Source of the DNA: Octopus sinensis
Lineage: Eukaryota
Assembly: GCF_006345805.1 (NCBI RefSeq)
Contig: NC_043021.1
Location: forward strand, 14,632,001 to 14,696,000
Direction of reading: 5' to 3'
DNA length: 64,000 nt
The notes under the pieces are model-generated. The model was not told the origin of the DNA and did not search any database. It was given only the letters and a program-made list of their open reading frames with translations. The stretch's first letter is position 1, and every line of letters starts with the position of its first letter. Made by a program: the position numbers and the translations under genes. Positions 18,646-55,440 of the stretch are shown here, in pieces.

Positions 18646-21217
18646 TCAATATAATTCATCATCATCGTCATCATAATTATCTTCACTAGCATTACTTTTT
18701 GTGTATGTCCTGTTGTCATGGTAACTATCTTCAAAGGAAGAGTCAGAAACCACCTTGATAAAGTTTGTCCTGTCTTTGCTCCTCGTTTCCCTTTGGCGAG
18801 CATTCAGGAAACGCTGGCGGCCAGTGGTCAAAGGCTTGGTGAGCTTCGGCACCTGAGTGTCTGCTCGCGTCCCCCCCGCATTGTTTGTGCTCGCATCTGA
18901 TGTCGAGACGTAGCTGTCGTCACTACAAGAGGTTCGTCGAGACGTGCTTCCCAGGTTTTCTTGCGACCCTCGCTTCGTTACCTCCGAGTAATCAAGGTAA
19001 CTGGAACCCGAAGCATTCTCATCGGAATAGTTCAGCTCGGAATACATAGCACTGACACCATTCCGAGATGCAGAAACTTTGCTAGATAAATCTTTAGTTG
19101 ATGCGGCTGGAATACGAGAAGTGTGTGCACTCGGAATTCGAGATTTTGGAATTCTTGTTTCGATAGATTCCTGAGAAGTTGGAACTCTGCTAAGTTCTTG
19201 AAGTGCTGCTGATATTTTCTCGACAGAATCGTTGTCGGAGTTTCTTTGGATCGATGAACGTCTCGAGTTGGTTCGTGAAGAACGTGAACTATAGGGTTGG
19301 TTAGCATTACTGTCCAGTGAAGAGGCATCAGTACAGTTTCCCTGGGACTCATTATCGACGCTATCAAACAGATCCATTGCAGCATTGGTGCTGTCGGTCG
19401 CTTTCACCATATCCTGCAACTCCTTCTGGCGATAAACTTCAAAAAGTCTTTCCATTTTTTCGTACATTTCTGGATCTTCAGGTGGAGCATCAAGCTCTTC
19501 GGGGTCTGAGACTTTCGGCATGATACCATTGACTGGAATCAGAGCTGCTTTGATTGCTTCCAGAGGATAGGGAGTCAGGTCATAATCACAGTTATCTTCA
19601 GGTTCTGCAGCTGGAGGAGGTCGTTTAGCTAACGATGCAGCCCGTTGTGAACGACTGTACTTCACATTGCTGCCATGGGCTGCGGTGCTGTTCTTGGTTG
19701 CTCCTGGCTTCGACAACTCAGACAGACGTTGACCCAGTGGACGTGTTTTGTTCTGAGCCAAGTCTGCTCCATCTTCCATGCTGCTTGTACTGTCCAGTCT
19801 TTGGCGCTGAGAGAATCTATCAACACTCTGAGATCGGGGTTTCAAACTTGAACTAGCTGCCATGTGTTTGGCTCGCCCCACTTTGGGAGACTGGGAAATT
19901 TTCCGATCAGGCCGTGACATGTCTCCAACGGCATCTTTGGAGGCATCCTTTTTGCTTGATTTTGCAACCCCTGAACTCATTTTGGGGACGCCCTGAGCTT
20001 TAGCTAAGGACACAGTGTGACCTCCTGAGTTTGTTCTCGAAACAGTAATTACTTGGGGGCTTTCTTTACTGTTGTAGCGTACAGCCGAAGCAGAACGCTT
20101 GCTGCGGTGCCATCTGTCAACATAACTAGGCAACAATAGCTTGTTCTTTGTCTCATCCATTGTCAGATCTCGTCTCGTATTCAGACTCTGAGTAGATGAC
20201 GACCGAGAAGAGAGGCCACTCTGAGACTGAAGACTACCACGACGACCTGGTGTTGGGGTGAGTGCTTCGTTATCTTCATCAGCGGAAGACTGAGTATCGT
20301 CAGTTGAGTACTGCTTTGCCGCTCGTCGATGTGTGAATTCCTGAATACCTGGAGTCGAAGCTCTCCTAGGGACATTCACTGACAGTTTGTGTCCACTGTC
20401 TAAATCTCTTGGTCCAGGGGTAGTGGACCTAGGAATTGCAATTTTAGATTTTGATGAAGACTTCTTAGTAGTTCCCAAGGAAAGGTCCTCCATCGATTGA
20501 CGTAGACTCTTGTTATTACGACTATATTTTCTCTCTTGCTTTGGTGTATCAAACACAGAACTTTTATCACTTGGAGTGACAGGACAAGAAAACTGGGAAT
20601 TGGTAGAGCTGGGGCTTGTACTTTGAGATGTACAAGGTCTACTTGAGTCTTGTGAAGGAGATTTCATGGGGATTTTGGAATCTCCGTTTATATGCAATGA
20701 AGCTGGAGTGTTCGGCTTTGGAAGGAGACTACTGGATTTGCCTTTGGTGACATCTCTGTGTTGATTTAGGTTAGAGATCGAACTGGAATTACTTTCAGAG
20801 GGTTTCATACAAATTTTGGACTCAGGAGACGGAGAACGCGTCCGGCTACTCGGAATTCTAAGGCTCTGCGTATTCTGATGAAGATTGGAAAATTTCTGGT
20901 CTGTAGGTTGAGTTTTAGAAACATCCTTGTTATTATGTCCTGGATACTGAAGCCGGGAAACTTTGGAAGGACTGCTTTTGGTACTGGAACAGTTACTTCC
21001 GGTTGTCGATGCTGCCTGCGAGAGGTTCGACTCTACAGAACTGCTGATGTTGCTACCGTCTTTCGGCGCCGGCACAATTTGGTTGTTGAGCAGATTTTTG
21101 AACTGCTCCAAGGTCATGGTACTAATTTGATTCATATCTAGTTTTCCGGAACGTTCTTTAGGGTCCACATCACTCAATTTTTCAGAAGATGCACTTAATG
21201 ATGAAGAGGCAGACGAT
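18646..21217 (-). CDS. Large terminal coding exon (2572 nt to stop); Ser/Arg-rich disordered region with multiple SxIP motifs and acidic C-terminus
   Basis: 870-aa ORF in track; acceptor ttttttttttccttctatttccag|A is phase 2, matching the donor at 25825 (AA+A = Lys). Exon sum 169+403+2572 = 3144 nt = 1047 aa + stop. Confidence 0.92.
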
Positions 21218-21492
21218 CTGGAAATAGAAGGAAAAAAAAAAGAATGAGACTCAATCAACAGCGATGATTTAATTATATTAATAAAAGATTTGAAATTTTT
21301 AAAAGTTTAAGGCATAGCTGTGTGGTTAAGAAGCTTGGTTTTTCAGTCACGTGGTTTTAAGTTAAGTCCCATTGTGCAGCACCTAGGGTAAGCATCTTCT
21401 ACCATAGCCCTGAACTAACCAAAGCCTTGTGAACAAATTTGATAGATAGAAACTGTGCAGAGGCTGGTTGCATATATATATATATATGTATA

Positions 21493-21729
21493 TTTTGGGT
21501 TGGTGCGAAATTATTACGGCTTTTTTTCAAATTTTATTCAACAAAAACAATAACAATATTTAACAAAAACATCTTCAAATGGCGGTCTGACCCATCTGCC
21601 AAGCAAATGGGAAGCAGTAATTGAAGTAGATGGGGAATATGCTCCGGAATAATCATTTAAAGATGTTTTTGTTACATGTTGTTATTGTTTTTGTTGAATA
21701 AAAGCCACAATAATTATTCACCAAATCTA
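21493..21729 (+). mobile_element. Mariner-derived MITE retaining the transposase C-terminus
   Basis: Long imperfect inverted arms (ttattcaacaaaaacaataacaa...); internal frame HLPSKWEAVIEVDGEYAPE* resembles the mariner transposase end. Confidence 0.7.
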
Positions 21730-22678
21730 TGTGTATATACAGGTGATCTGGAACTAAATTCTGTTTTTAAATGTCTCGCTTCGAGAATTGCATTCGGTAC
21801 GATTTGTTTATTTTTGGTAGTTATGACTTTAAAAGTCCCTCCTAGCGTGTGACATTTATGTGTAATAATGCCCTCTATATAATATAAATATATATATATA
21901 TATATCTTTTTTACATTTTATCTTATATTAAACTTTTTAATACTTTTTCATAGTTATATATATATTTAAAAAAAATTATATATATATATAAATTCATAAA
22001 TATAAATTAATAATTTTAAGTTTTTAACTTTAAATTTAAATATTTTAAATTTTATATATTTTGTATATTATATTAATTATTTTTATTTCTGTGTTTTGGT
22101 TTATGTTTTTCACTGTTTGATTTGCCTAATAGTGGTTTTATCTCTAATTTAATTTATATCTATATCTATCTATCTATATATATATATATATATGTGTGTG
22201 GTGTGTGTGTGTGTGTTCCCTCTGTTACTTGACAACCGGTGTTGGCTTGTTTATGTTCCTGAAACTTAGTGATTAGGCAAAAAGAAAAAAAAAACTAACA
22301 GGATAAGTACTAGGATTGAAATAGCAAACAAAAACAAGTGCTGGGATCGATTTGACCAAACCTGTTAAAGCAGTGCCCCAGCATGGCCGCAGTCCAAAGA
22401 CTGAAACAAGTAAAAGAAGACAGTCAGAGGCAGACAGTCAAAGACCATGATCTTTGCAGTCAGCTCACAAAACAATTCATAGTGTATATGTGTGTACATA
22501 CACAGACATATACATATATACATGCAGGCATGGTTGTGGAGTAAGAAGCTTGCTTCCCGGCCACATGGTCCTGGGTTCAGTCCCACAGCATGGTACCTTG
22601 GGCAAGTATTTTCTACTATAGCCTGAGGTGACCAAAGCCTTGTAAGTGGATTTGGAAGACGGAAACTGAAAGCTCATC

Positions 22679-22716
<38 letters not shown>

Positions 22717-22734
22717 GAGGATCAGAATCGAAAT

Positions 22735-23103
22735 CGATCAATGGAAATTGCAGATGTGTTACCAGTGCCGGTGGCATGTAAGAGAACTTTCCGTTTCGCG
22801 ACCGTTGCCAGCACCGCCCTGTTTCGTGTCCGTTGCCAGCCTCGCCTGGCCCTCGTGCCGGTGGCACATAAAAGCACCATCCGTTCGTGGCCGTTTGCCA
22901 GCTCTGTCTGGCACCAGTGCGGGTGGCACGTAAAAAGCACCCACTACACTCACGGAGTGGTTGGCGTTAGGAAGGGCATCCAGCCGTAGAAACACTGCCA
23001 GATTTGACTGGGCCTGATGAAGCCTTCTGGCTTCACAGACCCCAGTAGAACCGTCCAACCCATGCTAGCATGGAAAACGGACGCTAAATGATGATGATGA
23101 TGA
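22735..23103 (+). mobile_element. SINE/non-autonomous retroelement family C (ttggcgttaggaagggcatccagccgtagaaa ... (TGA)n tail)
   Basis: Homologous copies at 43688-43830(-), 50600-50760(+), 52385-52580(-), 60571-60930(-). Confidence 0.75.
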
Positions 23104-23123
23104 TATATATGATTCGATATTTA

Positions 23124-23161
<38 letters not shown>

Positions 23162-23374
23162 TTTTGACCAACAAACAAATTGATTACCACCATTAATTCT
23201 GTTATTACCTGATTACCTGTATCCTATGTACATAGTATGCTAGCATAGTCATGCCCAGGGTTAGCATAGGTAAGTTAAACATGTAGTAATAATGGATATT
23301 CTTATCTCTTAGATGGTTACTCTAACCGCTAACTCTACTTACCTCTCTCTCTCACTGTATGTATATATATATAT

Positions 23375-23679
23375 CACGTCATCACCATCACGTGACCGAC
23401 CAGTCCATCAGATGTAGTTACACATCGCTGGTCACAATGCGTTCGCATTGTTTTAGCCTTCGAATTACGCCACCCCGCTGGCTAAGCGAGCAGGCCAACA
23501 GAAGAAAGAGTGGGAGAAAGAGTGGTGAAAGAGTACAGCAGGGATCACCACCCCCTGCCGGAGCCTCATGGAGCTTTTAGGTGTTTTCGCTCAATAAACA
23601 CTCAACGCCCGGTCTGGGAATCGAAACCGCGATCCTACGACCGTGAGTCCGCTGCCCTACCCACTAGGCCATTGCGCCT

Positions 23680-23681
<2 letters not shown>
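23375..23681 (-). mobile_element. tRNA-derived SINE family D
   Basis: Minus-strand head ggaggcgcaatggcctagtgggtagggcagcggactc...ggtttcgattcccagacc (A/B boxes); second copy at 53006-53298. Confidence 0.8.
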
Positions 23682-23733
<52 letters not shown>

Positions 23734-24278
23734 TATGTATGTATGTATGTATGTATGATGTATGTATGTATGTATGTATGTATGTATGTATGTATGTATG
23801 TATGTATGTATGTATGTATGTATGTATGTATGTATGTATGTATGTATGTATGTATGATGTATGTATGTATGTATGTAGGTGTATGTATGTATGTATGTAT
23901 GTAGTAGTTGTATGTAGTATGTATGTATGTATGTATGTATGTATGTAGTATGTATGTTGTATGTAGTATGTATGTTGTATGTATGTATGTATGTATGTAT
24001 GTGATGTATGTATGTAGATGTATGTATGTATGTATGATGTATGTATGTTGATGTATGTATGTAGGTAGTATGTATGTATGTATGTATGTATGTATGTGTA
24101 TGTATGTATGTATGTATGTAGTATGTATGTATGTATTATGTATGTATGTATGTATGTATGTATGTATGTATGTATGTATGTATGATGTATGTATGTATGT
24201 ATGTATGTATGATTGTAGTATGTATGTAGTATGATGTATGTATGTATGATGTATGTAGTATGTATGTATGTATGTATG

Positions 24279-24309
<31 letters not shown>

Positions 24310-24337
24310 TGTATGTATGTATGTATGTATGTATGTG
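23682..24337. repeat. (TA)n followed by a long imperfect (TATG)n microsatellite
   Basis: Directly visible. Confidence 0.95.
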
Positions 24338-24354
24338 TGGTGGTGTGTGTGTGT

Positions 24355-24765
24355 CAGGCATGGCTGTGTGGTCAGGAAGCTTACTTTCAACCACACGGTT
24401 TCAGGTTCAGTCCCACTGCGTGGTACCTTGGGAAAGTGTCTTCTGTTATAACCTGAGGCTGACTGAAGCCTTGTGATTGAATTTGGTAGGTGGAAACTCC
24501 CTTTGTGTGTGTGTACATATTGTAAAAGTGTTTATGCTTCCAATAACAGATAAGAGGGTAATATCTATGCGTGTGTGTCTGTTTGTCCCTCATCACCACT
24601 TGACAACTAGAGCTGATGTCTTTTATGTCCCTGTAACTTAGCAGTTTGGCAAAAAAAAGAAACTGATAGAATAAGTACGAGGCTCGAAAAAAAAAAAAAA
24701 AAAACGTCCTGGGACTGATTCCTTTGACAAAACATTCTTCAAGGTGGTGCCCCAGCATGGCCGTT
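24355..24765 (+). mobile_element. SINE family A copy (diverged)
   Basis: Head ggcatggctgtgtggtcagg to tail gtgccccagcatggcc. Confidence 0.8.
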
Positions 24766-24789
24766 CATTGCAACTTTTGAATCAGTGCA

Positions 24790-25290
24790 GTGAAACATGG
24801 ACACTGGCAAAGAAATGATCAAACGGGCTGAATGGATGCCAGAAAAAAGCCCTAAATATGAAACGACTCAACATATGATGAATGAATGAATGCCTTTATG
24901 GGGACCAGCTGAAAGTGAATGAGAAGATCAGGCAAAGACAGCTGTGTTTATCTGGTCACTGCGTGAACCACCCTGAACTGGAAGCATCGAATTAAGTCTT
25001 GTGGAACCCACTTCATGATGTAAGAAAAGGAGAACTTGATTGCAGACACTGACCAGGATCTTGAGGCAGTGGTGATGTACCCCGAGAAGTGTGGCAGGTA
25101 GATTTTGTTGCAGCAGCCCGATCAGGCAAAGATGGCTTTGAATATCTGGTCACTGCGTGTGCTACCCTACAACCGGAAGCACCCAAATTAGTCCCGTGGA
25201 ACCCACTTCATGGTGGAGTAAGAAGATTGCAGAGACTGGCCTGTAATGTATCCAGGACCTCGAGGCAGAGATGATGGACATGGGTGGACT
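24790..25290 (+). mobile_element. Degenerate RTE-type LINE C-terminal relic with an internal duplicated segment
   Basis: Frame ETWTL...LYGDQLKVNEKIRQRQLCLSGHCVNHPELEAS.VLWNPLH; the tatctggtcactgcgtg...gtggaacccacttcatg block occurs twice (~24950, ~25144). Confidence 0.65.
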
Positions 25291-25420
25291 TTGTTGCCGC
25301 AGCCTTTGTTGGAACCGAACTATAATAATATGACTGGAACAAGTAAAAGATTATCATCATCGTTTAATGCCTGCCTTCTATGCTGGCCAGATAGAAGACT
25401 ACCCCCAGGCTACTGTGTCT

Positions 25421-25790
25421 GTTTTGGCATGGTTTTTACAGTTGGATTCCCTTCTTAACACCAACCACCCCGTAGAGTGGACTGAATGCTATTTACATGG
25501 TACCAGCACAGGTGTGGTCAGTTTTGGCATGGTTTTTACAGCTGGATGCCCTTCCAAATGCCAACCACTTCAGTGTGGACTGGATGCCTTTTATGTGGCA
25601 CCAGCACAGGTGTGGTCAGTTTTGGCATGGTTTTCACAGCTGGATGCCCTTCCCAATGCCAACCACTTCAGTGTGGACTGGATGCCTTTTATGTGGCACC
25701 AGCTCAGGTGTGGTCAGTTTTGGCATGGTTTTTACAGCTGGATGCCCTTCCAAATGCCAACCACTTCAGTGTGGACTGGATGCTTTTTAC
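25421..25790. repeat. Tandem array of ~3.75 x 98-bp units derived from family-C SINE sequence
   Basis: Unit starts at 25421, 25521, 25619, 25717. Confidence 0.9.
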
Positions 25791-25824
25791 ATAAAAGATA
25801 AAAGATAAAATAATATGTACTCAC

Positions 25825-26227
25825 TTGAGACTAGATGAAGATGCCGGTGACATAGTTCTCTTGGTTGGAGAGAACTGCAGCCTCTGGTAAGAGGATGGCG
25901 GAGCCATTTTAGAACTAGCTGAATACGGATGGTGCTTTGCAGGAGAGGTAGACAGGTTCCGTGACAAATTGCTGATATTTTCGGCGCTCGAGTGGAAATT
26001 ACCAGTTTTTTTGTTGAGTCTTTCAGCTACTGGAGACTGAGAGCGAGGGGGTGTGGTTGAAACATAATTTCCTTGTTTGTTACCAGAACCGCCACCGGTC
26101 ATCAGGACTTTTTTAGGACTTCTCTGGCCAAGGTGTTCTGCTAAGATTTGACCACCAGGGGCACTAGCTCTCCGTTCAGTTTGTCGTTTGACCACGGGTG
26201 ATTGTGAAGCAGGGTTTACTCGGTGAC
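25825..26227 (-). CDS. Internal coding exon of host gene (G-HRVNPASQSPVVKRQ...SSSSL-K), Ser/Pro-rich
   Basis: Polypyrimidine tract + tag|GTCAC acceptor; CTCAA|GTGAGT donor; 403 nt open in the frame of track ORF 25821-26195; phase 1 in, phase 2 out. Confidence 0.9.
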
Positions 26228-26592
26228 CTATAGAGACAGGAGAAAAAAAAAAAAAGAAGACATTTGATAAATATATTTTGATTAAATATAAAGAATTGTG
26301 GTTCTATGATCAACAGATTTCTAGATTCTTTGGATATTTGTTTATGACCAAAAACTCTCTCACAGCCATCTTTCAGTTTACCTGTCTGTCCCTTCATTCA
26401 TTAATCAACCGATCACTCTCTCTCTCTCTTTCTATTTTTCTGCATATCTCTCTATCTGTTTGTCTCTGCCTCTCTTCCTGTATTTCTCTAGCTGTTTCAC
26501 TCCCTCTCTATCCCTGTCTCTCTGTATATTTCTCTCTATCTTGCTATCCATAACTCTGAGTATCTCTCTCTCTCTCTCTATATCTCTCTATA

Positions 26593-26638
<46 letters not shown>

Positions 26639-26639
26639 T

Positions 26640-26895
26640 TTTCTCTTTTTACTTGTTTCAGTCATTTTGACTGCGGCCATGCTGGAGCACTGCCTTTAAT
26701 CGAGCAACTCGACCCCGGGACTTATTCTTTGTAAGCCCAGTATATATTCTATCGATCTCTTTTGCCGAACCACTAAGTGACGGGGACATAAACACACCAG
26801 CATCAGTTGTCAAGCAATGCTAGGGGGACAAACACAGACACACAAACATACATGCACATACATATAAAATACCTGTACATCATCTCCAAACCTTC

Positions 26896-26936
<41 letters not shown>

Positions 26937-27087
26937 ACAGGCTTTTAGTTTCCATCTACCAAATCCACTAACAAGGCTTTGGTCAGCCCGAAGCTATAGT
27001 AGAAGACACTTGCCTAAGGTGTCATGCCATGGGACTGAACCCAGAACCATGTGGTTGGGAAGCAAGTTACTTACCACACAGCCACAT
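26640..27087 (-). mobile_element. SINE family A copy
   Basis: Full-length match. Confidence 0.9.
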
Positions 27088-27789
27088 ATATCAGTAGTTC
27101 TGATTCTGTCTCCACAGCAACCCTTCTTCCAGTCTGGCGATCAATCTGTCTATCTATTTGTCTCCCTAACAATCTCTCTCTCTCTCCGTAGTCCATATAA
27201 TCATGTATGTTTGTGATGTTGGTATCACGGTAGTCTGTAGTGTTGTTGTTGTTGTTGTTGTTGGTGCTGCTGGTGGTTGTACTGATGGTGCAGGGGGTAC
27301 TATTGATAGTATTGTAGTCAATCTTGTTAGTGGTTAATATAACAGGTGTGTGTGTGGGTGGGTGGGGAAGAAATAGTGATAGAAACAGTAAATGTAATAA
27401 TGATGATGACAATGAAGATGGTGGATTGATTTTATCTGCTTCACTGCCACCACCACCGCTGCCGCCGAGACCACGATGATGATCCCACTGCCACGACAAC
27501 GACGTACACCACCACCATCACCGAAATTGCTCCACTTCTCCTCACCACCACACCCACTGTACAACCACTACTATTAATTATACAATCAATCCTCTTCCAA
27601 CCTCCACTCCTGCCATGGCCACCTACCCCCACCAAACTACTTAGACATTACACCACAGACAAAATCGGTTAATATTAGAGATTTCAGTGAATTAAACTGA
27701 CATCAAAAGTGTGTGTGTGTGTGTGTATTTACATACATAGTAATGGAGGAAAAGTAGGAGATCAAATGCATGAAGATTATACCACCACC

Positions 27790-27999
27790 ATACACACCCA
27801 CACATGCATAAATATATACCCATACACACATATATATATACACACACATATATACTCATACACACACACATACATGTGTGTGTATATATACATATACATA
27901 TACACATATATATACATATACACATATACATACATATACACATATACATACATATACACATATACATACATATACACACATACATACATATACACACAC

Positions 28000-28034
<35 letters not shown>

Positions 28035-33351: not shown

Positions 33352-33982
33352 TGCCCTTGTTATATATACTCTCTGCTATGGCCCAGCAACCTGGTATGGT
33401 GACAGCAAGGTCCTTGGGTTGTAGGTTTTTTTTTACCTCAAAGTGTTCTTATCTTTGGCAGGTTGCTGTACCGAGCATACATGACCTTCCCTCCCCACCA
33501 GACATTCCAAGCTAATTAACCCATGCATAAATACACACACACACACACACAAAATGATAGTCTGACTTTGGTGATTTCCGGAATTTATGATGATTTTCCC
33601 AAAATTTATCAACAAACATGTTAAACAAAAAACAAATGTTAACAAAAAATACAAGTGATGCATGCACATACACATTAGACAGTATACATAAACATACACA
33701 TATATTACATATATATATATACACACATATGTACTATATATTATATATTACATATATAAATACACAATGAGAACAATGTCATGGTTTTGTGAATTAGTAG
33801 GTATTAGGAAAAACCTCGAAAGTGATGCACATACACGCACACACACATGACTATGCATGCACACTCACACAAATATACACATGGATGTCTGTTCATACAT
33901 ACACACGTACATACATGCACATGTATATACACATACATGCAGTGGTGGACTGGGTCTAAAATTATTGGTTGCCAAGAGACTA

Positions 33983-34557
33983 AAGGGGCCCACCCGCAAC
34001 TACAAGGGGGGGCCAACCTCACCTACAAGGGGACCCACCAGCAACTACAAGGGGGCCCACCTGCACCTACAAGGGGTCTACCCGCAACTACAAGGGGGGG
34101 CTACCTGCAACTACAAGGGGTCTACCCGCAACTACAAGGGGACCCAACCTCAACTACAAGGGGACCCACCTGCACCTACAAGGGGTCTACCCGCAACTAC
34201 AAGGGGGGGCTACCTGCAACTACAAGGGGTCTACCCGCAATTACAAGGGGACCCACCCGCAACTACAAGGGGGCCCACCTGCACCTACAAGGGGACCCAC
34301 CTGCAACTACAAGGGGGCCCACCCACAACTACAAGGGGGCCCACCTGCACCTACAAGGGGTCCTACCCGCAACTACAAGGGGGGGGGGCCCACCCACAAC
34401 TACAAGGGGACCCACCTGCACCTACAAGGGGCCCACCTGCAACTACAAGGGGACCCACCTGCAACTACAAGGGGGCACACCTGCACCTACAAGGGGTCCA
34501 CCTGCAACTACAAGGGGGCCCAACCTCACCTACAAGGGGGCCCACCCACAACTACAA
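33983..34557. repeat. GC-rich minisatellite, ~20-21-bp units (cacc[c/t]gca[a/c]ctacaagggg..)
   Basis: Roughly 27 variant units; source of repetitive track ORFs 33847-34662 and 33857-34570. Confidence 0.95.
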
Positions 34558-35227
34558 TGCTATCATTTAATTTTCTTTTTTTTTTTGTTGCTAAAAGTAT
34601 TCTTTTCAACTCTCTACAAACACAGCCAGGCTGAAATAATTAAAGCATTCTTCCAGGAGTGAATAAAAAATTCCCAAATTCGAGGGGACGAGACCCTTAG
34701 ATACTAACATGGGCCCCCAAACATGGGTTCTAATGCACAGGGGCCCACTTGCCATCAGACAACCTGGCAACTTGGCCAGTGTGCCAAGTGTGCATACACA
34801 GACATGTGTATGCACAAATGCATGTCTATTCATACACACATGCATAATGGCACATATAAATTGGCACCCTGTCAATTACAATGACAAGGGCTCCAGTTGA
34901 ACTGATCAACAGAACAGCCTGCTCGTGAAATTAACATGCAAGTGGCTGAGTACTCCACAGACACATACCCTTAATGTAGTTTCCAGGGAGGTTCAGCATG
35001 ACACAGAATATTTTGTTGTTGTTGTTAAGCAGCAAGACGGGTAAGGGTGATTAGGTGATGGTCTAGGGCTTTAGGGTGGGAGACCCCAGACCTTGGAAAA
35101 AAAACAAACTTTGGTCGTCTTGTAGTCAAGGGCTCTTTGTTGATGCCCGACATCACTGGGAGGTGGCCCTTGATGTCGCTGGAAATGGAGATCTCCAGGT
35201 CCAAATTCTTGGATGGCTGACACAGAA

Positions 35228-35490: not shown

Positions 35491-35841
35491 GCAGATTAAG
35501 TCTGACAGCAACAAATAATAAAAAACAAAAACAAACAACACACACACACAGACACGCACAAAGAAATAAACCGAACAACATGCAAACAAGGTTCTAACCC
35601 TGATGATGGACTGTGGTACGATTATTGATGACTTTCATCTGAGGTGTGGCTATAATGAATGAAATAATAAATAGAAAAAAAAAAAAAATTTAAGATGAAA
35701 TAAATGAAAAACAAAAAGACAAAAATATAAAACGAAACAAAATAATATAATATGAAGTGAAATAATGAAGTTCAGAAAAAAAAAACAAAAAATACAATAT
35801 TGTGTTGAAACAATTGTGATTGATAATAAAAATTCTTGTAT

Positions 35842-38901: not shown

Positions 38902-39282
38902 TAGTTTGGACCAGTAGAATGCTTATAAACTCAAAAGATGGACATGGCAGTTGCTCTTTACTGTCACACAAAGTGCATTATGGGATGCAAGCCCCATGGA
39001 AAGGCCTGTTTTCTTTTTCTGTCCAGGACTAGAACCTGTAAATGTCTTATATCAAACACAACACACACATGCATACATATACATATATGTTTGTGTGTGA
39101 GGGTTTGTGGTTTAGTGGTTAGGATGTTGGACTCATGATCTTAAGGTTGTGGTTAAAATTCCCGGACTGGGCAATGTGTTGTGTTCTTAAGCAAAATACT
39201 TCATTTCAGGTTGTTCCAGTTCAGTCAGCTGGCAAAAATGATTAATTCCTGCAATAGACGAGTGTCCCATCACAGGGGACAA

Positions 39283-39950
39283 TATATATATATACATACA
39301 TATATATATATATATACATACATACATACATATACATACATACATATACATACATACATATACATACATACATATACATACATACATACATACACATACA
39401 TACATATATATATACATACATATATATATACATACATACATACATATACATACATACATACATACACATACATATACATACATATACACATATACATATA
39501 TATACATACATATACATACATACATACATACATATATATATATACATATATATATACATACATATATACATACATATACATACTATATATATACATATAT
39601 ATACATACATACATATACATATATATATATACATACATATACATATATATATACATACATATATATATACATACATACATATACATATACATACATACAT
39701 ATAATATATATACATACATATACATACATACATACATACATATATATATATACATACATATATACATACATATATATACATATATATATACTATACATAC
39801 ATATACATATACATACATATATATATACATACATATATATATACACATACATATATACACATACATATATACATACATATAGATATATATACATATATAT
39901 ATACATATACATACATACATATACATATACATACATATAGATATACATAC

Positions 39951-39981
<31 letters not shown>

Positions 39982-40482
39982 CATACATACATATATACAC
40001 ATACATACATATATATATACATACATATATACATACATAATATATATATATATACATACATATACAACATATACATATACATACATATATATATATTATA
40101 CATACATATACATATACATATATACATATATATATATATACATACATATACATACATATACATATACATACATATATATATACATACATATATATATACA
40201 TATACATACATATATATAATACATACATATATATACATACTATATATATACATACATATATACATACATATACATACATATATACATATACATACATATA
40301 TATATACATACATATATACATACATATATATATATACATACATATATATATACACATACATATATACACATACATATACATACATACATACACATACATA
40401 TATATATACATATATATATATATACATACATATATATATACATATATATATAATACATACATATATTATATATACATACATA

Positions 40483-40522
<40 letters not shown>

Positions 40523-40690
40523 CATACATAAATGGCAGTGCCCCAGCATGGCCACAGCTCATGAGCTGAAACTAGATATAATAAATAAAATAAAAAATAT
40601 ATATGTGTATATATATATGTATGTATATGTATATATGTATATGTAGATATATATATGTATATATATATATATGCATATATATATGTATGT
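39283..40690. repeat. ~1.3-kb compound (TA)/(TACA)/(CATA) microsatellite with a SINE tail fragment at 40530-40590
   Basis: Directly visible; source of the YI/VC-repeat ORFs. Confidence 0.95.
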
Positions 40691-44189: not shown

Positions 44190-44900
44190 ATTTTACGGAA
44201 TGAGCGATAGAAACACAGAAACGACATAATCTCTCCAGAAACAAGTATAAAGCAAGGAAGATTATAGAAAACCGAAGGCAAGAGTATGAAGGGAGAAGAG
44301 ATTTTCTCAAGGTCAGCAAATGCATGTTGCAATACTTAATGCTGAATCATTAATTCAATGTTTTAATGATAAGACAGAGGTCCAGTAGAATAGCTCTTAG
44401 AAACAGACTACGTACAAATTCATTCTTCACAACTTCTGAAGCTGTTTTCAGACATGATCCATCCCATTCTTATAAAAATAACTCTGTCGAAATTGGTGTG
44501 CTAAACACAAATTGTCGTTTATGTAGAGCTTTAACATTTTCAAATGAAACAAATGGTATATGCTGCTCAGGCAGTCAGGTAACATTGCCAGCACAACCAA
44601 CTCCTTTTCAACCTCTTACGAATCTTCTAGAAAGCACTTCCATCCAGTCAAAGGATTTTCTGAACAATATCAAACAATACAACTCTGCATTTCAAATGAC
44701 ATCGTTTGGTGCATCTAAGAAGATAGATAAACATGAATTTACGCTGATGTCAAAGTTCAAGGGCAAGTCTATCAACTCGTTGGTTCCCTGTTACCTGCAA
44801 ATGAACAACCGCAGATCCTCAAACTTTACTTTATGAGTGATGTAGGACAATAAACCTGACGGAAGTGTCAAAATTTCAGATGATGCATTGTGTTAGACAC
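44190..44900 (+). mobile_element. Helitron Rep-helicase N-terminal relic
   Basis: IG...CRLCRALTFSNETNGICCSGSQVTLP...FLNNIKQYNSAFQMTSFG, then after a frameshift KVQGQVYQLVGSLLP...LYF: Helitron N-terminal motifs. Confidence 0.85.
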
Positions 44901-46239: not shown

Positions 46240-46362
46240 GAAAGAGAGAGGAAAGACAGAAAGAGAGGCTGTGAGGAAGAAAGAGAGAGGAAAGACAGAA
46301 AGAGAGGCTGTGAGGAAGAAAGAGAGAGGAAAGACAGAAAGAGAGGCTGTGAGGAAGAAAGA
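46240..46362. repeat. 3 x 39-bp purine-rich tandem repeat
   Basis: aagagaggct recurs at 46261, 46300, 46339. Confidence 0.85.
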
Positions 46363-46718
46363 GGAGAGAGAGAAAGAGATAAGACAGAAAAAAAGAGAAA
46401 AGAAAGGAGTGAGAGAGAAAAAGGAAAGAGCTGTATAGGACAAAGAAAAGGGGTAGAAAGGAGGAAGAGGGAAAAATGAGAGAGGGACAGGACTGATAAA
46501 GAAAAAAAAGAAAAGGGCGGATATAAAAGAAAAGGAGAGAGACAAGACAGAGAAACACAGATATGAAATAAAGATGAGAGAGAGAGTAGAGTGTTCTGGT
46601 TTGTAGTGTAAATTGGAAATAGACATGCAATGATTTTTTTATTGAAGTAACAAGGATCTGAGATGTCCTCCTGCACAGATGGTGGTGGCGTTGGGGGATC
46701 TGATTGCTGGAGTGTGTG

Positions 46719-46752
<34 letters not shown>

Positions 46753-46835
46753 GAAATGCATGTATCAGCATGTTTTTGCATGCAAAACATGCTTGTAAAT
46801 GTGCATGTATTATATATATATATATATATATATAT

Positions 46836-47712
46836 ATTACTCTTTTACTTGTTTCAGTCATTTGACTGCGGCCATGCTGGAGCACCGCCTTTAGTCGAGC
46901 AAATCGACCCCCGGGACTTTATTCTTTGTAAGCCCAGTACTTATTCTATCGGTCTCTTTTGCCGAACCGCTAAGTGACGGGGACATAAACACACCAGCAT
47001 CGGTTGTCAAGCAATGCTAGGGGGACAAACACAGACACACAAACATACACGCACACACACACATATATGTATATATACATATATATGACAGGCTTCGTTG
47101 TGGGAAATGGAAGGTTCAATGTTGCAGAGGGCTTTGTGGTTTCTTTCCAGACAGAAATTTTTCTATTAAGTTTGATGATTTTGTGTAATACACACACACA
47201 CCCATACAAGACGGGCTTCTTTCAGTTTCCATTGATCAAATCTACATGCAAAGCTTTGGTCAACCTGGGGTTATATAAGCTTATATACACACACACACAT
47301 ATATATATTGTCTTATTTTTTGTTTGTTTCGGTCATTAGACCGAGGCCATGATGGGGCATTGCTTTAAAGAGTTTTTAGCCAAATGAATCGACCCCAGGA
47401 CTTAATTTCTTTGGCTAAGCCTCGTACTTATTCTATCAGTCTCCTTTGCATAACTGCAGAGTTACGAGGATGCAAACATACCAACACCGGTTGTCAAGTG
47501 GTGCTGGGGGGACAAACAGACACAATGACACACACACACACATATATATATATATACGATGGGCTTCTTCCATTGTTCGTTTAACAAATCCGCTCACAAG
47601 GCTTTGGTTGGCCCAAGGATATAACAGAAGACATTTTCCCAAGGTGCCATGCAGTGGGACTGAACCCAGAACCATGTGATGAGGAAGCAAGCTTCTTACC
47701 ACGCAGCCACCC
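46836..47712 (-). mobile_element. Two SINE family A copies (46836-47090 truncated; 47310-47712)
   Basis: Consensus matches. Confidence 0.8.
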
Positions 47713-47796
47713 CTGTGCTGATATGTACTGACCCTGGTCTTTATTTGGTAGCTTCTTTGAAGAAATTTTATCAGACACTCAATGAAGACAATAATG

Positions 47797-48195
47797 GCAC
47801 ATGGTCTAGTGGTTAGAGCCTTGTGTTCATGATTGCAAGGTCATGATTTCAATTCCCAGGCCAGCAGGTGTGTTGTGTTTTTGGACAAAACCACACCTCA
47901 TTTCAGTTCACTCAGCTGTAAATGAGTAACCTTGAAATGGACTGACATTCCGCCCAGGGGTAATGTTGTGATTTCATGGAGGCGCATGGCTTAGTGGTTA
48001 GGGTGTTGGACTCATGAGTGTAAGACTGTGGTTTTGATTCCTGGACCAGGCAACATGTGTTTTTGAGCAAAACACTTCATTTCATGTTGCTCCTGTCCAC
48101 TCAGTGGGTGAAAATGAGTAACCCCGCGATGGACCAACGTCCTGTCCAGGTGGGGAATTTCTACGGAAATCAGGAAACTGACCCTTATAAGTTGG
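47797..48195 (+). mobile_element. Two tandem tRNA-derived SINEs of family E (ggcgcatggcttagtggttagg...gatggac..cgtcc.gtccag)
   Basis: A/B-box head and CORE/V-like central block; related copies at 17145-17240, 29125-29350(-), 39100-39280. Confidence 0.7.
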
Positions 48196-48374
48196 TATGA
48201 TCCAAGAAGGAAGCTTTACCTTCACCTTTAATGTTGTGGTCTTGGTCAGTTTATGTGCTATGGAAACCAGGTGACCAATCCTGTGAGTCCTAGGAGTTGA
48301 GGCAGTAATGTCCAGGGTTGATGATGATGACAATTATAATAACTGCTGAAACGTTCATTTGAGTTCTCAACAAT

Positions 48375-48845
48375 GATAATCCTTTCTGCAATAGGAACAA
48401 GGCCAGGGTGAGGGGACTAGTTGATACATTGACCTCAGTACAAGACTGGTATTTATTTTATTGACCCCCGAAAGGATGAAAGGTAAAGTCAACCTTGGTG
48501 GAATTTGAACTCGGAATTTAGCGACAGGCGAAATACCGCTAAGCATTTCACCCAGCGCATTAACGATTCTGCCTGCTCGCTGCCTTTATAACGATAATAA
48601 TAATTATTTCAAATTTTTGCCACAAGGGTAGCTTGGGGGAGGTGGGGATGAGTTGATTACATCAACCCCAGTGCTCAACTGGTACTTATTTTATCGACCC
48701 CGAAAGGATGAAAGGTAAAGTCGACCTTGGTAGAATTTGGTTTCCATAGCACATAAACTGACCAAGACCACAACGCAGTAACAGGTGAAATATCACTAAG
48801 CATTTCGTCCGGTATGCTAATGTTTCTGCCAGCTCGCCGCCTTTA
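48375..48845 (-). mobile_element. Two family-B SINE copies (48375-48590, 48605-48845)
   Basis: Consensus matches; the second carries a templated insertion. Confidence 0.85.
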
Positions 48846-49911
48846 TAACAATAATAATAATAATAATAATGATGATGATGATGATAAAAAAGATAATAAT
48901 GATTTCTTTCTTTTTTTTTCTAAAGTTTATAATAAGGAATATAAAAAGAGGTGGATGATGAATAATTAACGATAAAAGTCTATAGGAAAAGAGAAGCTGG
49001 GGAGGGAGGGTGTTTCGGAGCAGGAAATGGGGGCAGTTATTCTGGGCACCAAATGATTACTAAGCTGTACTAAGGAACTGTGTGTGTGTGTGTGTGTGTA
49101 TGCGGAGGAACACAGGCACACACATACATACAGACATGCATACATGTGCCGCCTCGCTGTGATAAGCCAAATTTAATGCAAGCCATGATGCCATCTCAAA
49201 ATAAATCAAGCAACCACTACCACCACCACCTCCTCCTTCCCCTTTCTCCACTACCACCACCTCCTCCTCCTCCTTCCTCTTTCTCCACTACCACCACCAC
49301 AACCTCCTACACAATTAATTTGCGTCTTTTCTCTTAAACAGAACACGGCTTAATCTCTATCAAATCTAAAAGTCACCATTCTAAGACCTTCTTCTCTTCC
49401 AAGAATACCATCTTCAGTGCCAACTCCTCCCTCAACCATCTCGCACAGAAATTCTTCAGTTTTCTCTTCCTCTGTCAGCATTTTTCTTAAGTCTACAAAA
49501 TACTTATCTCACTTGTATCATTCAAGTTGCTATTGTAATTTTTAATTTTGTTCTCACAACAATTGCATCTGCATAATTCCCCCAGCACTTCATTAGTGCA
49601 CACTAATTAACTATTTTGGTCCCAATTAATATAACATGTTTATTTTTTCACAAATCATTTAAATTAGTGCCTTTTTTTTTTTTTTTGCTTCGTTTTGTTT
49701 CTTTTGCTCATTTCAGTCATTTGACTGTGGCTGTGCTGGAGCATCGCTTTGAAGGGTTTTAGTTGAACAAATTGACCCCCACCCTCCTGGCCACCAGGAC
49801 TGTTTTTTTTTTTTAAAGTCTAGTAATTAATCTAGTGGTCTCTTTTGCCGAATTGCTAAGTTACAGGGTCATAAACACACCAACATTGATTGCGGGAAAG
49901 GGACACACATA

Positions 49912-49942
<31 letters not shown>

Positions 49943-50910
49943 TGCCCTTCCTAACAACAAATACCTTACATAGTGGACTGACTTTTTTATGTACCACTAT
50001 ATATATATATATATATATAGACGTTTATGTATTTGTTGTGCAAGATTTTTTATGCGGTCACAGTGTGACGAAAGAACTCTGGCCGAAATAAGATTAAGAT
50101 TAATGTAAATAATAAATAACACTGAAGCAAAATAACACCAAATATATAGTGCGTGTGTTTTTATTGGCTAAACTGGCAAAATGACCATTCCGAAATATAA
50201 CAATATATATATATAAATAAATAAATAAATGTGTGTGTGTGTATTTATGTACGTATATATATATATATGTATATATATATATGGTATAATTATAAACAGG
50301 ACAAATTCTAGCCATTTCTCCACAGACTGAAAAAGTGACGAACAACCTTAATCGATTTTCGAACCTTTATATATGTATGTGTGGCTGAGTTACCACTCAG
50401 CCACACATAGTAGCTTACTTCTCAACCACATAGTTCCGGGTTCAGTCCCACTTGCAGTTTGGCAGGAGAAACTGATAGAATAAGTACTAGGCTTTAAATG
50501 AAACAAATCCTGGGGTCAATTTGTTTGACTAAAGCCCTTCGAGGCGGTGTTCAAGCTTGGCCACAGTCAAATGACTGAAACAAGTAAAAGATATGTACGT
50601 GTCACCCAGGACATCCAATGGTCAGTGTTAGAAAGGACATTCAGCCATAGAAACTACACTGAAGCAGACACTGTAGTTTGATGAAGTCCTCGGGCTCTTT
50701 GAATACTGTCCAAGTGTCCACCTGAAGCTAGCATGGAAGACAGACATCGAATGATGATGAGGATAAGGATATAGGCAAATATGAGTGTGGGGAAATGCAC
50801 GTGTGTGTGTGCGTGCGTGCGTAAATACATCCAGTGGTAATGTACAGGTAATGAAGAGTAAAGACAATTTAATTCGGTTAGCTGAAACTAAAACTATATG
50901 AGTTACTTAA

Positions 50911-51225
50911 CCCTTTCGTTACCAACCCGGCTGAAACCGGCTCTAGCTCTTTAGTACAAATGTCTTGTTTTCATAAGTTTTGAATTAAAATCTTCCACCA
51001 GGGTGGAATTTAACCCTTTTGTTACCATATTTCTTTTGAGGTGCTCTGTTTTTCTTTCAATTAATTTTAGATATAACAAAGAATTTAGTAAAATAACTTA
51101 GTTATCATTCAGCTAATGTTAGGAACATAAATTGTGACTAAGTTATTTTACTAAATTCTTTGTTATATCTAAAATTAATTGAAAGAAAAACAGAGCATCT
51201 CAAAAGAAATATGGTAACAAAAGGG
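50911..51225. mobile_element. piggyBac-type (TTAA) MITE rearranged by an inverted duplication
   Basis: TTAA|CCCTTT(C/T)GTTACC ends at 50907, 51010 and (reverse) 51229; 105-bp inverted repeat. Confidence 0.75.
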
Positions 51226-51261
51226 TTAAATTCCACCCTGGCCTTCATTATTGAACCACAA

Positions 51262-51400
51262 TAATAACAGCCACAGATTATGGTAATGCTGTCACTCTCT
51301 TTATAGATGCGGTCTCAGAAGCTTCCACTCTTCTACATGACCTTGGAAAAGCAGCAAGAATTATTGATCTTTACGTCTCTGCAGTACTGGCTTAGAACAA
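51262..51400 (+). mobile_element. Degenerate RTE RT relic (post-YADD region)
   Basis: Frame ITATDYGNAVTLFIDAVSEASTLLHDLGKAARIIDLYV resembles DYADDIALL.D...AQ.LL..LE.AA..IGLYVN. Confidence 0.5.
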
Positions 51401-51789
51401 GGGCTTACTGGGCAGTTGTCTGAATGGTCTCACGGGTTTGCATAGAAAAGAATGTGCACGTACAAGTGCTAGGTTAAGAAGCTCACTTGGCAACACTGAG
51501 GGTTAAGGTTCACTCCCACCGTGTGGCACCTTGGGTAAGTGTCCTGTACTGATGTTAATCTATGTATATCAGAGTTGTGTATATAAGGGTCCCAGAATGT
51601 TGCTACATTCAGGGTCTACAATTCTGTTAAGACAAATTTATGTCTATATCTCAAAAACGAACAGATCTACAATCAGGGGCAGGGTTTAGCAAACATTATC
51701 AAAGAAAACCCTTCAAATCTGTAGATTCCTTGGTAACAGTATTCACAGAAAAAAAAAAACACCCAAAAAATGTACAGGGATAGTTGCGT

Positions 51790-51950
51790 GTTTGAAATGC
51801 TTGTTCAGTAATGACGTGGTTTTGGGTTCAGTCCCACTGCGTGGCACCTTGGGCAAGTGTCTTGTACTATGACCCTGAGTTGATCAATTCCTTGTGCATG
51901 AATTTGACAGTTGAAAACTTGGTGGAAGCGCATCTTGTGTGTGTGTATGA

Positions 51951-51981
<31 letters not shown>

Positions 51982-52200
51982 AGTGTGTGCTTCATCCCCA
52001 CTACCAGTCCAACAACTGGTATTGGTTTGTTTACATCCTCATAACTTAGTAGTTCAGCAAAAGAGACCAATAGAATAAGTACCAGACTTATTAAATATGT
52101 ACTTGGGGGATGATTTGTTCAAATAAAACCATTCAAGATGGTGCCCCAGCCTGGTCACAGTGCAATGACTGAAACAAGTTAAAAAAAAAAAGATAAAAAA
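51790..52200 (+). mobile_element. Diverged SINE family A copy
   Basis: Head and tail match. Confidence 0.75.
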
Positions 52201-52938
52201 CATTTTATCCACCTTTCAGTGACCTTTTTCCTAAGACAGCTATGCTGTGATTTGAAGGAGATTTAACTTCTATTTCTAGCTGGTCAACAACTGTGCAGTG
52301 GAGGGGTCCCTCATCAGCATATAGAGCAGTTTATTAGGGTTCATGCTGCAGAAGATGATTGCTGTCACACCATCTAGCACAACAACATCAGACACCACTG
52401 CCATTTAATGTCTGATTTCCATGTTGGCATGAGTTGGACAGCTTGACAGGAACTGGCAAGGCCAGGGACCACACCGGGTTCCATAATCTGGAAGCCCTTC
52501 CTAATGCCAACCACTTTACAGAGTGTACTGGGTGCTTTTTAGATGGTACCAGCACCAGTGCCCACACCAATGATTTCTATGTGGCATCTGGTTGTAGGAT
52601 AGAGGGGATGTTTTTCCCTTTTTTTTTTGTACTTGCTGGGGGTCCAGAGAAAGATGCAGTGTCTGTGGTGTATTTTGGGCCCTCCAAGACTTGGTGAGAT
52701 TGATATCATTAATGATCTTGAACCCTTCCTTGTAAACCAACATCTGCAGGACTGGCATGAGCACGGTGGGAATTCCAGAGGGATGGAGACTGGAGGAGGA
52801 AGGATTGGGAGGAGTGATTAGTGCAGAGCCTTGTAGAGAGGAAGGGGTCAGTCACAACAAAAAATGATGAGAGGAGGAGAGACAAGTGGAATGGGAATGC
52901 ATGAAAGGATGTGGCATAAGCCACACACACAGACATCA

Positions 52939-53003
<65 letters not shown>

Positions 53004-53607
53004 TATCACATGATCGACCAGGCTATCAGATGTAGTTACACATCGCTGGTCACAATGCGCTTCACATTGTTTTAGCCTTCAAATGACGCCACTCCGCTGG
53101 CTAAGCGAGCAGGCCAACAGAAGAAAGAGTGAGAAAAGGTTGTGGTGAAAGAGTACAACAGGGATCATCACCACCCCCTGCTGGGGCCTCGTGGAGCTTT
53201 TAGATGTTTTTGCTCAATAAACACTCAATAAACAATCGAAACTGCAATCCTACGACCGCGAGTCTGCTGCCCTAATCACTGGGTCATTGCACCTCCACAT
53301 ATATATGAATATACGTATGCATAAATATTTATACTATAAAGCTGTATATACCTACTGAATGACAACCATTGCATCAAACGGTGAAAGGATGAAATTGCAG
53401 ATGTTAAGCGGGTTGGATAGGTCAACAAAAGTTTGGATTTGAGAGGGTTTTATAGCATTGGTTGTGAGTTTGGTGCAGGGCTTCAAGGGAACATATATGT
53501 GTGTGTGTCAGTGGATATACATGTGAGTGTGACTGCGTGTGTCTGTGTAGCTGTGGTGGACCAACAGAAAAGTAGAAAGATAACACAATACAACAGACAA
53601 ATATGTA

Positions 53608-54575
53608 AATCTCTCTGGTCTCACAATCTTATGATTCTCAAGAGTAACATTAGGTGTTAAATGGAAGGACTTGGAGCTATGATGTATTTCTCAGAGTCAA
53701 GACAAATACACCATAAACAAATGAAATTCTGAGACTGATGGAATATATCTAAATAACTCTTCTTAATGACTCCGAGTGCATTTTCAACTTCTCTTTTCCT
53801 TATATGTGCATGTATGTATGTATATATGCATGTGTGCAATCAAGACACCATAAAAGAAAAATGGAGAATTATACATCTTCAAAATTCGTTTATTAAAATA
53901 TTATTCTCATTAAATTCTCTACCCTTATTCCTTTACATTATGTGTGTGTGTGTGTGTGTTGGTAATAGTAAGGTTAGTCAGAAGACATTATTCCTTAGTT
54001 TATTTATATGCAAGAAATCTTCAAATTTTCCAATGAAATGAAATGAAATAAAATATTTTATTTTATTTCATTCCATTTCCTTAGAAAATGTGTGTGTGTG
54101 TATGTATTCTGTACACTGCCAGAGACACTTTGTTCCCCACTTCCTGAAAAGTACAAAAACTGTGTGATAACATACAGAAGATGCAGATAGACATATTATC
54201 ATTGATAAGGTCACAGGATGTGATGAAAGAACTTAACCAACCAATTAATCAACTAATCAATCAATCTATGTTTTTAAATAACTCTCTAATTAATTAATAA
54301 TAAAACTGAAGCAAAATTGCATGAATTAGCTGCAAAGCCACTCCACTAGAATATAAAACAATACTCATACACACAAATACATACAGAAAAGAGAAGTTGA
54401 AAATGCACTCGGAGTCTTTAAGAAGAGTTATTTACATTTACTTCATCAGTCTCAGAATTTCATTTGTCTGTGGTGTATTTGTTTTGACTCTGAGAAAGAC
54501 ATCATAGCTCCAAGTCTTTCTGTCTAACACCTAATGCTACACTTGAAAATCATAAAATCGTGAGACCAGTGAAAT
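53608..54575. repeat. Inverted repeat pair, arms ~190 bp (53608-53800 / 54383-54575)
   Basis: The second arm is the reverse complement of the first at roughly 85% identity by eye. Confidence 0.85.
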
Positions 54576-55042
54576 TCAATGTAGATAAATCTTTTTAAAG
54601 ACTCCAAGTGCGTCTTCATTTTCCACTTCACTTTTCCATGTACTTCTACTCATGTAAAAGAAACTTATTTTCTTGTGTGTGTGTGCATATACAAATAAAT
54701 GGCGAGAGAGATAAGGTAGATGGGGTATGACAAGAAAAGGAAGATAAATGAGGGATAGATAAAATAGAGATAGAAAATAAAATTGGGAGAGAGATAAGTG
54801 AAGAGATAAGAAGCAAACAGATCAATAAAGATTGCCATGATGGTAGATTACATACATACACACACACTAGAAAGAGAGAGAATGCTGAATATACATGCAT
54901 CCAGACATACATATACATACATTATATATATATATATATATATACATATTCGGAGAGAGAAACACATATGCAAACAACAAAAAAATATGCAAATAAGCAT
55001 ATATATATATATATATATATATGCTTATTTGCACACACACAC

Positions 55043-55074
<32 letters not shown>

Positions 55075-55271
55075 CACACACATAAACATACAGATATAAA
55101 CACACATAAATATACAGATATAAACACACATAAATATACATACACACACACACACACTGCAGGAAAGAAATCTACATATATTTATATAGAGACGCAATGA
55201 ATGAAAGAATTAAAGAATGAGAAAGAATGGAAGGAAAAAAAAAAACCGAGACGCAAAAAGAAAGAACCTAC

Positions 55272-55440
55272 CATGAGGAACGACTCGAAAATCGTTGCAG
55301 ATTAGTTTTTCCAAGTTCTCTTCCTTTCTCTTAGCCTGTATTTCCTTGTTATCATCGTAAGCACTAAGCACGTTGTGTGTGCAGATGGTTGCGATATTCA
55401 TCTGCGCATTCAGAGACTTTCTGCTGTTGGTGTTCCCCAT
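55272..55440 (-). CDS. Predicted first coding exon of host gene (MGNTNSRKSLNAQ...DFRVVPH-G); N-myristoylation-type N-terminus
   Basis: ATG in strong context (ataATGG); 169 nt = 56 codons + 1 nt; ends at CATG|GTAGGT phase-1 donor, matching the phase-1 acceptor at 26227; non-repetitive, protein-like composition. Confidence 0.65.

Follow-up and report, generated by a model that had tools for sequence, protein, structure and literature searches.

A candidate myristoylation-type first exon in the 3' part of an octopus GAS2-like gene and a possible tail-only plus-end tracker

Exon structure and family of the gene

We analyzed a 64,000-nucleotide stretch of Octopus sinensis DNA (NC_043021.1, positions 14,632,001 to 14,696,000; hereafter, the window), in which an initial annotation made from the sequence alone had reconstructed a three-exon gene for a myristoylated, disordered protein with several SxIP motifs that could not be assigned to a known gene. 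We found instead that a cytolinker gene of the GAS2-like (GAS2L/Pigs) type gives rise to this product as one of its isoforms. On the minus strand, the segments 55440-55272, 26227-25825, and 21217-18646 add up to 3144 nt, corresponding to 1047 codons with a single terminal stop. The first two coding exons measure 169 nt and 403 nt, leading to phase 1 and then phase 2, and the phases agree at both junctions. The donors read ATG/GTAGGT and CAA/GTGAGT, while the introns end in CTCTATAG and ATTTCCAG, with strong pyrimidine tracts at both acceptors. The in-frame join through GT/AG sites was thereby confirmed, and it is the same as that of a deposited gene model: an exact-sequence look-up of the 1047-amino-acid (aa) product returned CAI9740870.1, "Hypothetical predicted protein [Octopus vulgaris]." The coordinates of all features are given in Table 1.

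Table 1. Exons, cassettes, motifs, and conserved islands of the GAS2-like gene within the window (aa numbering of the 1047-aa product)
Feature	Position	Strand	Remarks
Alternative 5' exon, coding part	55272..55440	-	56 codons + 1 nt; start MGNTNSRK; donor ATG/GTAGGT
Cassette exon, 51 nt, phase 1-1, encodes ATPQMKVINNRTTVHHQ	35599..35649	-	100% tblastn match; AG/GT boundaries
Constitutive coding exon 2, 403 nt	25825..26227	-	First part of the disordered tail (GHRVNPASQSP...RRASAP...)
Cassette exon, 39 nt, encodes N-LWTAAMLGHCFN-R (NLWTAAMLGHCFNR)	22362..22400	-	Inside dispersed repeat 22201-22417
Terminal coding exon 3	18646..21217	-	856 codons + stop 18648-18646; most of the C-terminal tail (basic, disordered, Ser-rich)
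Second conserved island, aa 217-238, LDMNQISTMTLEQFKNLLNNQ	21076..21141	-	Short predicted helix, pLDDT 83; kept in oyster
SLLP/SFLP motif	20730-20719	-	17 residues upstream of SKIP; from sequence comparison
SKIP motif, aa 371-374	20668..20679	-	Conserved in cephalopods as NG[DE]SKIPMK
Most conserved tail island, aa 740-807, PLEAIKAAL.PVNG...ELDAPPEDPEMYEKMERLF..R.KEL	19369..19572	-	Predicted helix 773-807, pLDDT up to 95
Cluster of three tandem SxIP motifs, TRIPKSRIPSAHTSRIP, aa 878-894	19108..19158	-	Decapodiform conservation
C-terminal ELY closing the acidic end DDDDDELY-COOH	18649..18657	-	From sequence

Exons 2 and 3 are 98 to 100% identical to annotated proteins from two species of Octopus and match decapodiform transcripts at 42 to 56%; they are certainly real coding exons. 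Exon 2 is also matched by genomic open reading frames (ORFs) of other cephalopods (P0015 and P0016), and in the long isoforms its sequence comes directly after the GAR domain. In a decapodiform ENA contig (ERZ21867824:ctg122354l, locus L001 10001-14747), the intron between the tail exons is about 1.9 kb long, compared to 4.6 kb in octopus, and the tail is split by gene callers into two separate ORFs of prokaryotic style (147 aa and 810 aa).

Two small cassette exons are used variably. The 51-nt cassette is present in the O. sinensis isoforms X1, X2, and X4, and the 39-nt cassette in X1, X3, and X4; neither is used in the 1047-aa model or in the O. vulgaris models. The dispersed repeat surrounding the 39-nt cassette is approximately 220 bp long, with at least 20 diverged copies in the window at 67 to 72% identity, and the cassette looks like the exonization of a SINE-like (short interspersed element-like) sequence into the GAS2-like tail. 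Peptides resembling TAAMLxHC are encoded by other copies of the repeat at approximately 30621, 47340, and 26664.

We then considered the family of the gene. CAI9740870.1 shares one 90% cluster with the O. sinensis isoforms X1 to X4 and with two further O. vulgaris products, CAI9740868.1 ("GAS2 2," 1267 aa) and CAI9740869.1 (1090 aa), the latter beginning at another alternative start (MERRSY...) that is followed by the GAR domain. The gene record lists the longest product only and spans 283 kb in O. vulgaris (GCA_951406725.2) and 278 kb in O. sinensis. Since only the longest product is recorded as the gene, the 1047-aa protein is the third product of one GAS2-like gene.

A Pfam scan of the 1047-aa product returned no family, and both the N-terminal calponin-homology (CH) domain, which binds actin, and the GAS2/GAR domain, which binds microtubules, are absent from this isoform; the family becomes visible only through homologs that carry the upstream domains. 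Indeed, a homology search with the 1047-aa product retrieved Octopus proteins of about 1280 aa (99% identity over 95%) carrying the Pfam domains CH (PF00307) and GAS2 (PF02187), as well as 1200-aa transcript-derived proteins of more distant cephalopods (42 to 43% identity), again with CH and GAS2 domains. The statement that no globular domain is recognizable holds for the 1047-aa isoform but not for the main products of the gene, which carry PF00307 and PF02187. In the 1267-aa product (P0011), Pfam places CH at residues 41 to 164 (E = 1e-12) and GAS2/GAR at residues 205 to 273 (E = 3e-34), and PF02187 is found at residues 30 to 96 of P0012. The best solved relatives are the CH domain of GAS2 (9kbx) and the GAR domains of MACF1 and GAS2.

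All deposited Octopus products except the tail-only CAI9740870.1 join the tail to CH/GAR exons, namely, two O. vulgaris isoforms and four O. sinensis isoforms, and so do two transcript-derived decapodiform proteins. The decapodiform transcripts P0003 and P0004 show the CH-GAR-tail layout of the long octopus products, and in oyster the same tail is fused to GAR. By tblastn, the exons for residues 1 to 276 of the long product, which comprise CH and GAR, are absent from the window. The CH/GAR exons lie outside it, and the window therefore holds just the 3' end of the gene. The intron preceding exon 2 is longer than 37 kb, and exon 55440-55272 sits within this intron.

With CH, GAR, an SxIP tail, and the exon linkage all found for the gene, it is a member of the GAS2-like family. 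We are confident that positions 18646 to 55440 (minus strand) cover the 3' part of this octopus gene, whose orthologues are Drosophila pigs and vertebrate GAS2L1-3. The apparent orphan corresponds to the EB-binding tail already known from GAS2-like actin-microtubule linkers; when a window takes in only the 3' portion of a 283-kb gene, a well-known family may pass for a novel one. The 1047-aa model is already public, and the inference of an EB-binding tail is not new.

A basic disordered tail with conserved SxIP motifs

The 1047-aa product is rich in serine (18.5%) and in lysine plus arginine (14.4%), with a net charge of +39. Its mean hydropathy (0.387) is below the Uversky boundary (0.427), placing it on the disordered side of the charge-hydropathy plot. 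When the protein was modeled by AlphaFold2 from an alignment of seven sequences, pLDDT was below 50 for 919 of the 1047 residues (about 88% predicted disordered), including most of exon 3. The islands at aa 217 to 238 and 740 to 807 were the sole confidently predicted helices.

Several parts of this tail are conserved between octopus and oyster. The region of the aa 740-807 island is 46% identical to oyster over 103 aa, and its first part (aa 740 to 790) follows the octopus-oyster pattern PLEAIKAAL.PVNG...ELDAPPEDPEMYE.ME.LF. In the aa 217-238 island, the invariant columns run from Q221 to N235, within the pattern LDMNQISTMTLEQFKNLLN (217 to 235). A further octopus-oyster island, VPKL.KPLTTGR, is located at aa 980 to 991.

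The tail harbors five [ST]x[IL]P motifs, SLLP 354, SKIP 371, TRIP 878, SRIP 883, and SRIP 891. Because an acidic residue immediately precedes SKIP 371 and TRIP 878, these two are weaker candidates for an EB-binding motif. SRIP 883 and SRIP 891 are located within KSRIPSAHTSRIPAAST and have no acidic neighbors. The cluster of three motifs is present in decapodiforms, and its last motif (SRIPA/SRIPAP, aa 891) is kept from octopus to bivalves, including oyster.

The acidic C terminus (window positions 18649-18672, minus strand) varies among species: it reads DDDDDELY in octopus and DDDEDETY in a decapodiform, while Drosophila Pigs ends in TELY and bivalves end in EEEEFV. CAP-Gly domains bind the EEY/F-type C termini of EB1, alpha-tubulin, and CLIP-170. 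By analogy, the DDDDDELY end, which resembles such termini, could provide a second link to the network of plus-end-tracking proteins (+TIPs).

The function of the tail can be approached through its orthologues. The tails of mammalian G2L1-3 bind EB proteins via SxIP/SxLP motifs (PMC4058111). The unstructured C terminus of Gas2L1 is sufficient to give plus-end comets, and a Gas2L1 Tail fragment comprising the GAR domain and the C terminus tracks plus ends in vitro with EB3 (PMC6831992). Similarly, PigsCT tracks plus ends, and the SxIP motifs are needed for any microtubule association; only the last one (SxIP3) is required for plus-end tracking (PMC4732294). According to the primer sequences, this last motif is SKIPAP, near the C terminus ending in TELY (PMC4732294). 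The octopus SRIP at aa 891 corresponds to Pigs SxIP3 in both position and sequence (S-K/R-I-P-A-P). Motif conservation and these orthologue experiments (PMC4058111, PMC4732294, and PMC6831992) are in good agreement with the earlier proposal of SxIP motifs embedded in basic disorder, and, by analogy, the assignment of the tail as an EB-dependent plus-end tracker is well grounded. The conserved SxIP motifs, above all SRIP at aa 891, would dock on EB proteins and hence reach growing microtubule ends, while electrostatic lattice binding by the basic tail may assist this recruitment. Taken jointly, the identity of the gene and the EB-binding nature of its tail are very probable.

Like the octopus long isoforms, GAS2L1/2/3 and Pigs combine CH, GAS2/GAR, and a long unstructured basic tail with SxIP/SxLP motifs (PMC4058111), and the Pigs SKIPAP and final ELY match SRIPAA and the final ELY in octopus. 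Furthermore, the engineered tail-only fragments of Gas2L1 and Pigs, which are EB-dependent plus-end trackers (PMC6831992 and PMC4732294), are comparable to the putative octopus tail-only isoform. However, unlike in GAS2L/Pigs, the octopus tail is longer (about 990 aa), its SxIP cluster is triplicated, and the gene has extra cassette exons, one of them repeat derived.

A putative alternative first exon with a myristoylation-type start

The deposited tail-only model starts in exon 55440-55272. As the initial annotation had noted, its N terminus fits an N-myristoylation consensus: MGNTNSRK matches PROSITE PS00008, G-{EDRKHPFYW}-x(2)-[STAGCN]-{P}, in a regular-expression search. This pattern serves here as the N-myristoyltransferase consensus; a literature check for a statement of that consensus gave only the Lys7-Asp471 contact. 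It is fitted by 6 of the 1996 ATG ORFs in the window (0.3%) and, among the 450 with at least 50 codons, by that of exon 55440-55272 alone. The ATG is the first in frame after the stop at 55647-55645, with no in-frame ATG upstream, and A at -3 and G at +4 give it a Kozak-like context. Among the candidates outside a transposon ORF, this exon has the best donor, the only one to agree with the consensus at 7 of 9 positions. By self-BLAST, the exon-1 sequence is unique within the window; as this places it outside the dispersed repeats, a transposon-derived origin of the exon was rejected.

Immediately 5' of the ATG, about 105 bp are duplicated (55462-55566 and 55571-55664, minus strand), and in each copy an (AAT)n microsatellite is accompanied by an acceptor-like CAG. 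If 55619 were used as a splice site, the result would be a 348-nt in-frame exon of phase 1-1, in which poly-Ile and poly-Asn would stand ahead of MGNT.

The O. vulgaris annotation takes 55440-55272 as the coding start of CAI9740870.1. This annotation is an EVidenceModeler consensus, to which splice forms were added by two PASA rounds using StringTie/TACO models from RNA-seq and Iso-Seq (PMC10700109). Since PASA adds isoforms from transcript models, CAI9740870.1, being an extra isoform, should be transcript derived. The junction 55272>26227 probably exists in RNA.

We envisage that an intronic promoter may make 55440-55272 a true alternative first exon, whose product would be N-myristoylated at Gly2. 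The resulting protein would be a weakly membrane-bound, actin-blind plus-end tracker or would compete with the full-length protein for EB. Such a tail-only form carrying a myristate is plausible; that it is made seems to us possible yet doubtful. The complete scenario, in which an octopus-specific intronic first exon turns the EB-binding tail into a stand-alone N-myristoylated plus-end tracker that either tethers growing microtubule ends to membranes or titrates EB and the full-length protein, is more tentative still and, taken as a whole, rather unlikely.

A somewhat better chance, although still short of even, goes to an alternative in which the exon is transcribed without being a productive start, as a cryptic, poison, or internal exon or as part of a low-level intronic transcript, the deposited protein being a by-product of longest-ORF annotation. 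The gene would then make just CH-GAR-tail and GAR-tail proteins and no myristoylated form. Several observations point this way and weigh against the tail-only isoform. First, exon 55440-55272 is missing from all four NCBI O. sinensis isoforms, X1 to X4, although these do share the alternative start MERRSY... with O. vulgaris. Second, the exon-1 peptide is an orphan. No homolog was found in a word-indexed search of 5.8 billion clusters, where a query combining exon 1 with a portion of exon 2 matched nothing but genomic ORFs of exon 2. Nor did a full HMMER scan with exon 1 alone against 1.84 billion representatives give a homolog, its one match being a spurious zinc-finger repeat protein. In addition, tblastn of up to 10 kb upstream of the decapodiform exon 2 revealed no counterpart, the octopus exon being located 29 kb upstream. 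Third, the ATG is preceded by acceptor-like CAG sites (55619 and 55519) whose tracts are 70% pyrimidine, so that the exon may be internal; most such splices from the GAR exon would meet a stop, leaving the ORF from the 55440 ATG as the longest. The sequence just upstream is the (AAT)n microsatellite duplication, with no obvious promoter. Fourth, AlphaFold2 modeled the exon-1 peptide as a low-confidence helix (pLDDT of only 45 to 53). Against the tail-only isoform in particular, its transcript origin is deduced from the description of the annotation method, and one myristate with just Arg7 and Lys8 as basic residues close by would confer weak, reversible membrane binding. An unproductive exon is harder to reconcile with a pipeline that draws isoforms from transcript assemblies, with the good ATG context lacking a competing in-frame ATG upstream, with the rarity of the myristoylation pattern among ATG ORFs of the window, particularly the long ones, and with a donor this close to consensus.

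It is considerably less probable that exon 1 is an ORF arising by chance, with no splicing to exon 2 at all, and that the deposited model stems from ab initio prediction. The 37.8 kb upstream of exon 2 contain about 10 distinct nonrepeat ATG...GT ORFs of phase 1 with at least 50 codons, comparable to exon 1 and in the same intron. That an upstream ATG exon can be joined in frame is, taken alone, nothing unusual, which also detracts from the tail-only isoform, and the failure of the word-indexed and HMMER searches to find exon-1 homologs is what a chance ORF would give. However, a single gene accounts for the 1047-aa model and two further products, and extra isoforms of an EVidenceModeler consensus gene arise in the published pipeline solely from PASA transcript updates. 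Moreover, the same exon was picked independently by a reading of the sequence alone and by the annotation pipeline, and among the candidates it combines the best donor with the sole myristoylation-type start.

An independent, unassignable gene for a domain-less, lipid-anchored +TIP, as the lack of a Pfam domain, the nearly complete disorder, the myristoylation pattern, and the SxIP motifs might have suggested, is highly improbable and was rejected, because the tail is common to CH/GAR-bearing isoforms of a known family: 95% of the product is shared exon for exon with CH-GAR GAS2-like isoforms in two Octopus species, and the fusion partner of the tail is CH-GAR in the decapodiform transcripts and GAR in oyster.

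Precedents and other elements in the window

In the literature we found, neither a natural tail-only isoform nor an N-myristoylation start is described for GAS2L/Pigs, and literature searches for naturally myristoylated SxIP proteins and for GAS2-like isoforms from alternative promoters gave nothing relevant. The closest precedent for a myristoylated tail-only isoform is dystonin/BPAG1 isoform 3 (BPAG1a3/b3), whose N terminus, encoded by an alternative first exon, harbors a conserved N-myristoylation motif (PMC3352950). Like the octopus gene, dystonin encodes a cytolinker with CH, GAR, and SxIP modules and has alternative first exons, and the proposed gene logic is the same. However, dystonin is a giant spectrin-repeat protein (a spectraplakin) and not an orthologue. 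Its myristoylated isoform retains the actin-binding and GAR parts, whereas the octopus 1047-aa isoform lacks CH and GAR. Furthermore, the dystonin motif is conserved among vertebrates, while the octopus exon has no detected homolog and appears to be young.

At the level of concept, the proposed isoform has counterparts in STIM1, AMER2, and melanophilin, membrane-held SxIP +TIPs that capture growing microtubule ends. These proteins are anchored by transmembrane, phosphoinositide-binding, or Rab-binding modules rather than by a myristoyl group, and to our knowledge they have no sequence relationship to the octopus protein.

The remaining interest of the locus depends wholly on whether the alternative start is productive. 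If the start is real and lipid modified, the isoform would represent a natural separation of the microtubule-tip function from actin and lattice binding. It would also join dystonin isoform 3 as a second example of a cytolinker gene in which an alternative first exon brings membrane targeting.

The transposon-like elements of the window were assigned by eye. The large intron contains two transposon-like ORFs, 61386-62042 (minus strand) and 44366-44836 (plus strand), one with a C-terminal motif resembling Pif1/Helitron helicases (GAPIMLLRNLDAPRLCNGTR) and the other resembling the N-terminal region of Helitrons. Downstream of the 3' end of the gene, a broken series of ORFs (5837-7843, minus strand) resembles a non-LTR (long terminal repeat) retrotransposon, with parts of an endonuclease and of a reverse transcriptase. 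Finally, in the regions 39270-40562, 23657-24394, and 33847-34662, long TG/TA-rich simple repeats generate spurious ORFs of up to 430 aa (MYVYIY...) and a minisatellite encodes RGPTCTYKG-like repeat units; both are traps for ORF-based scans.

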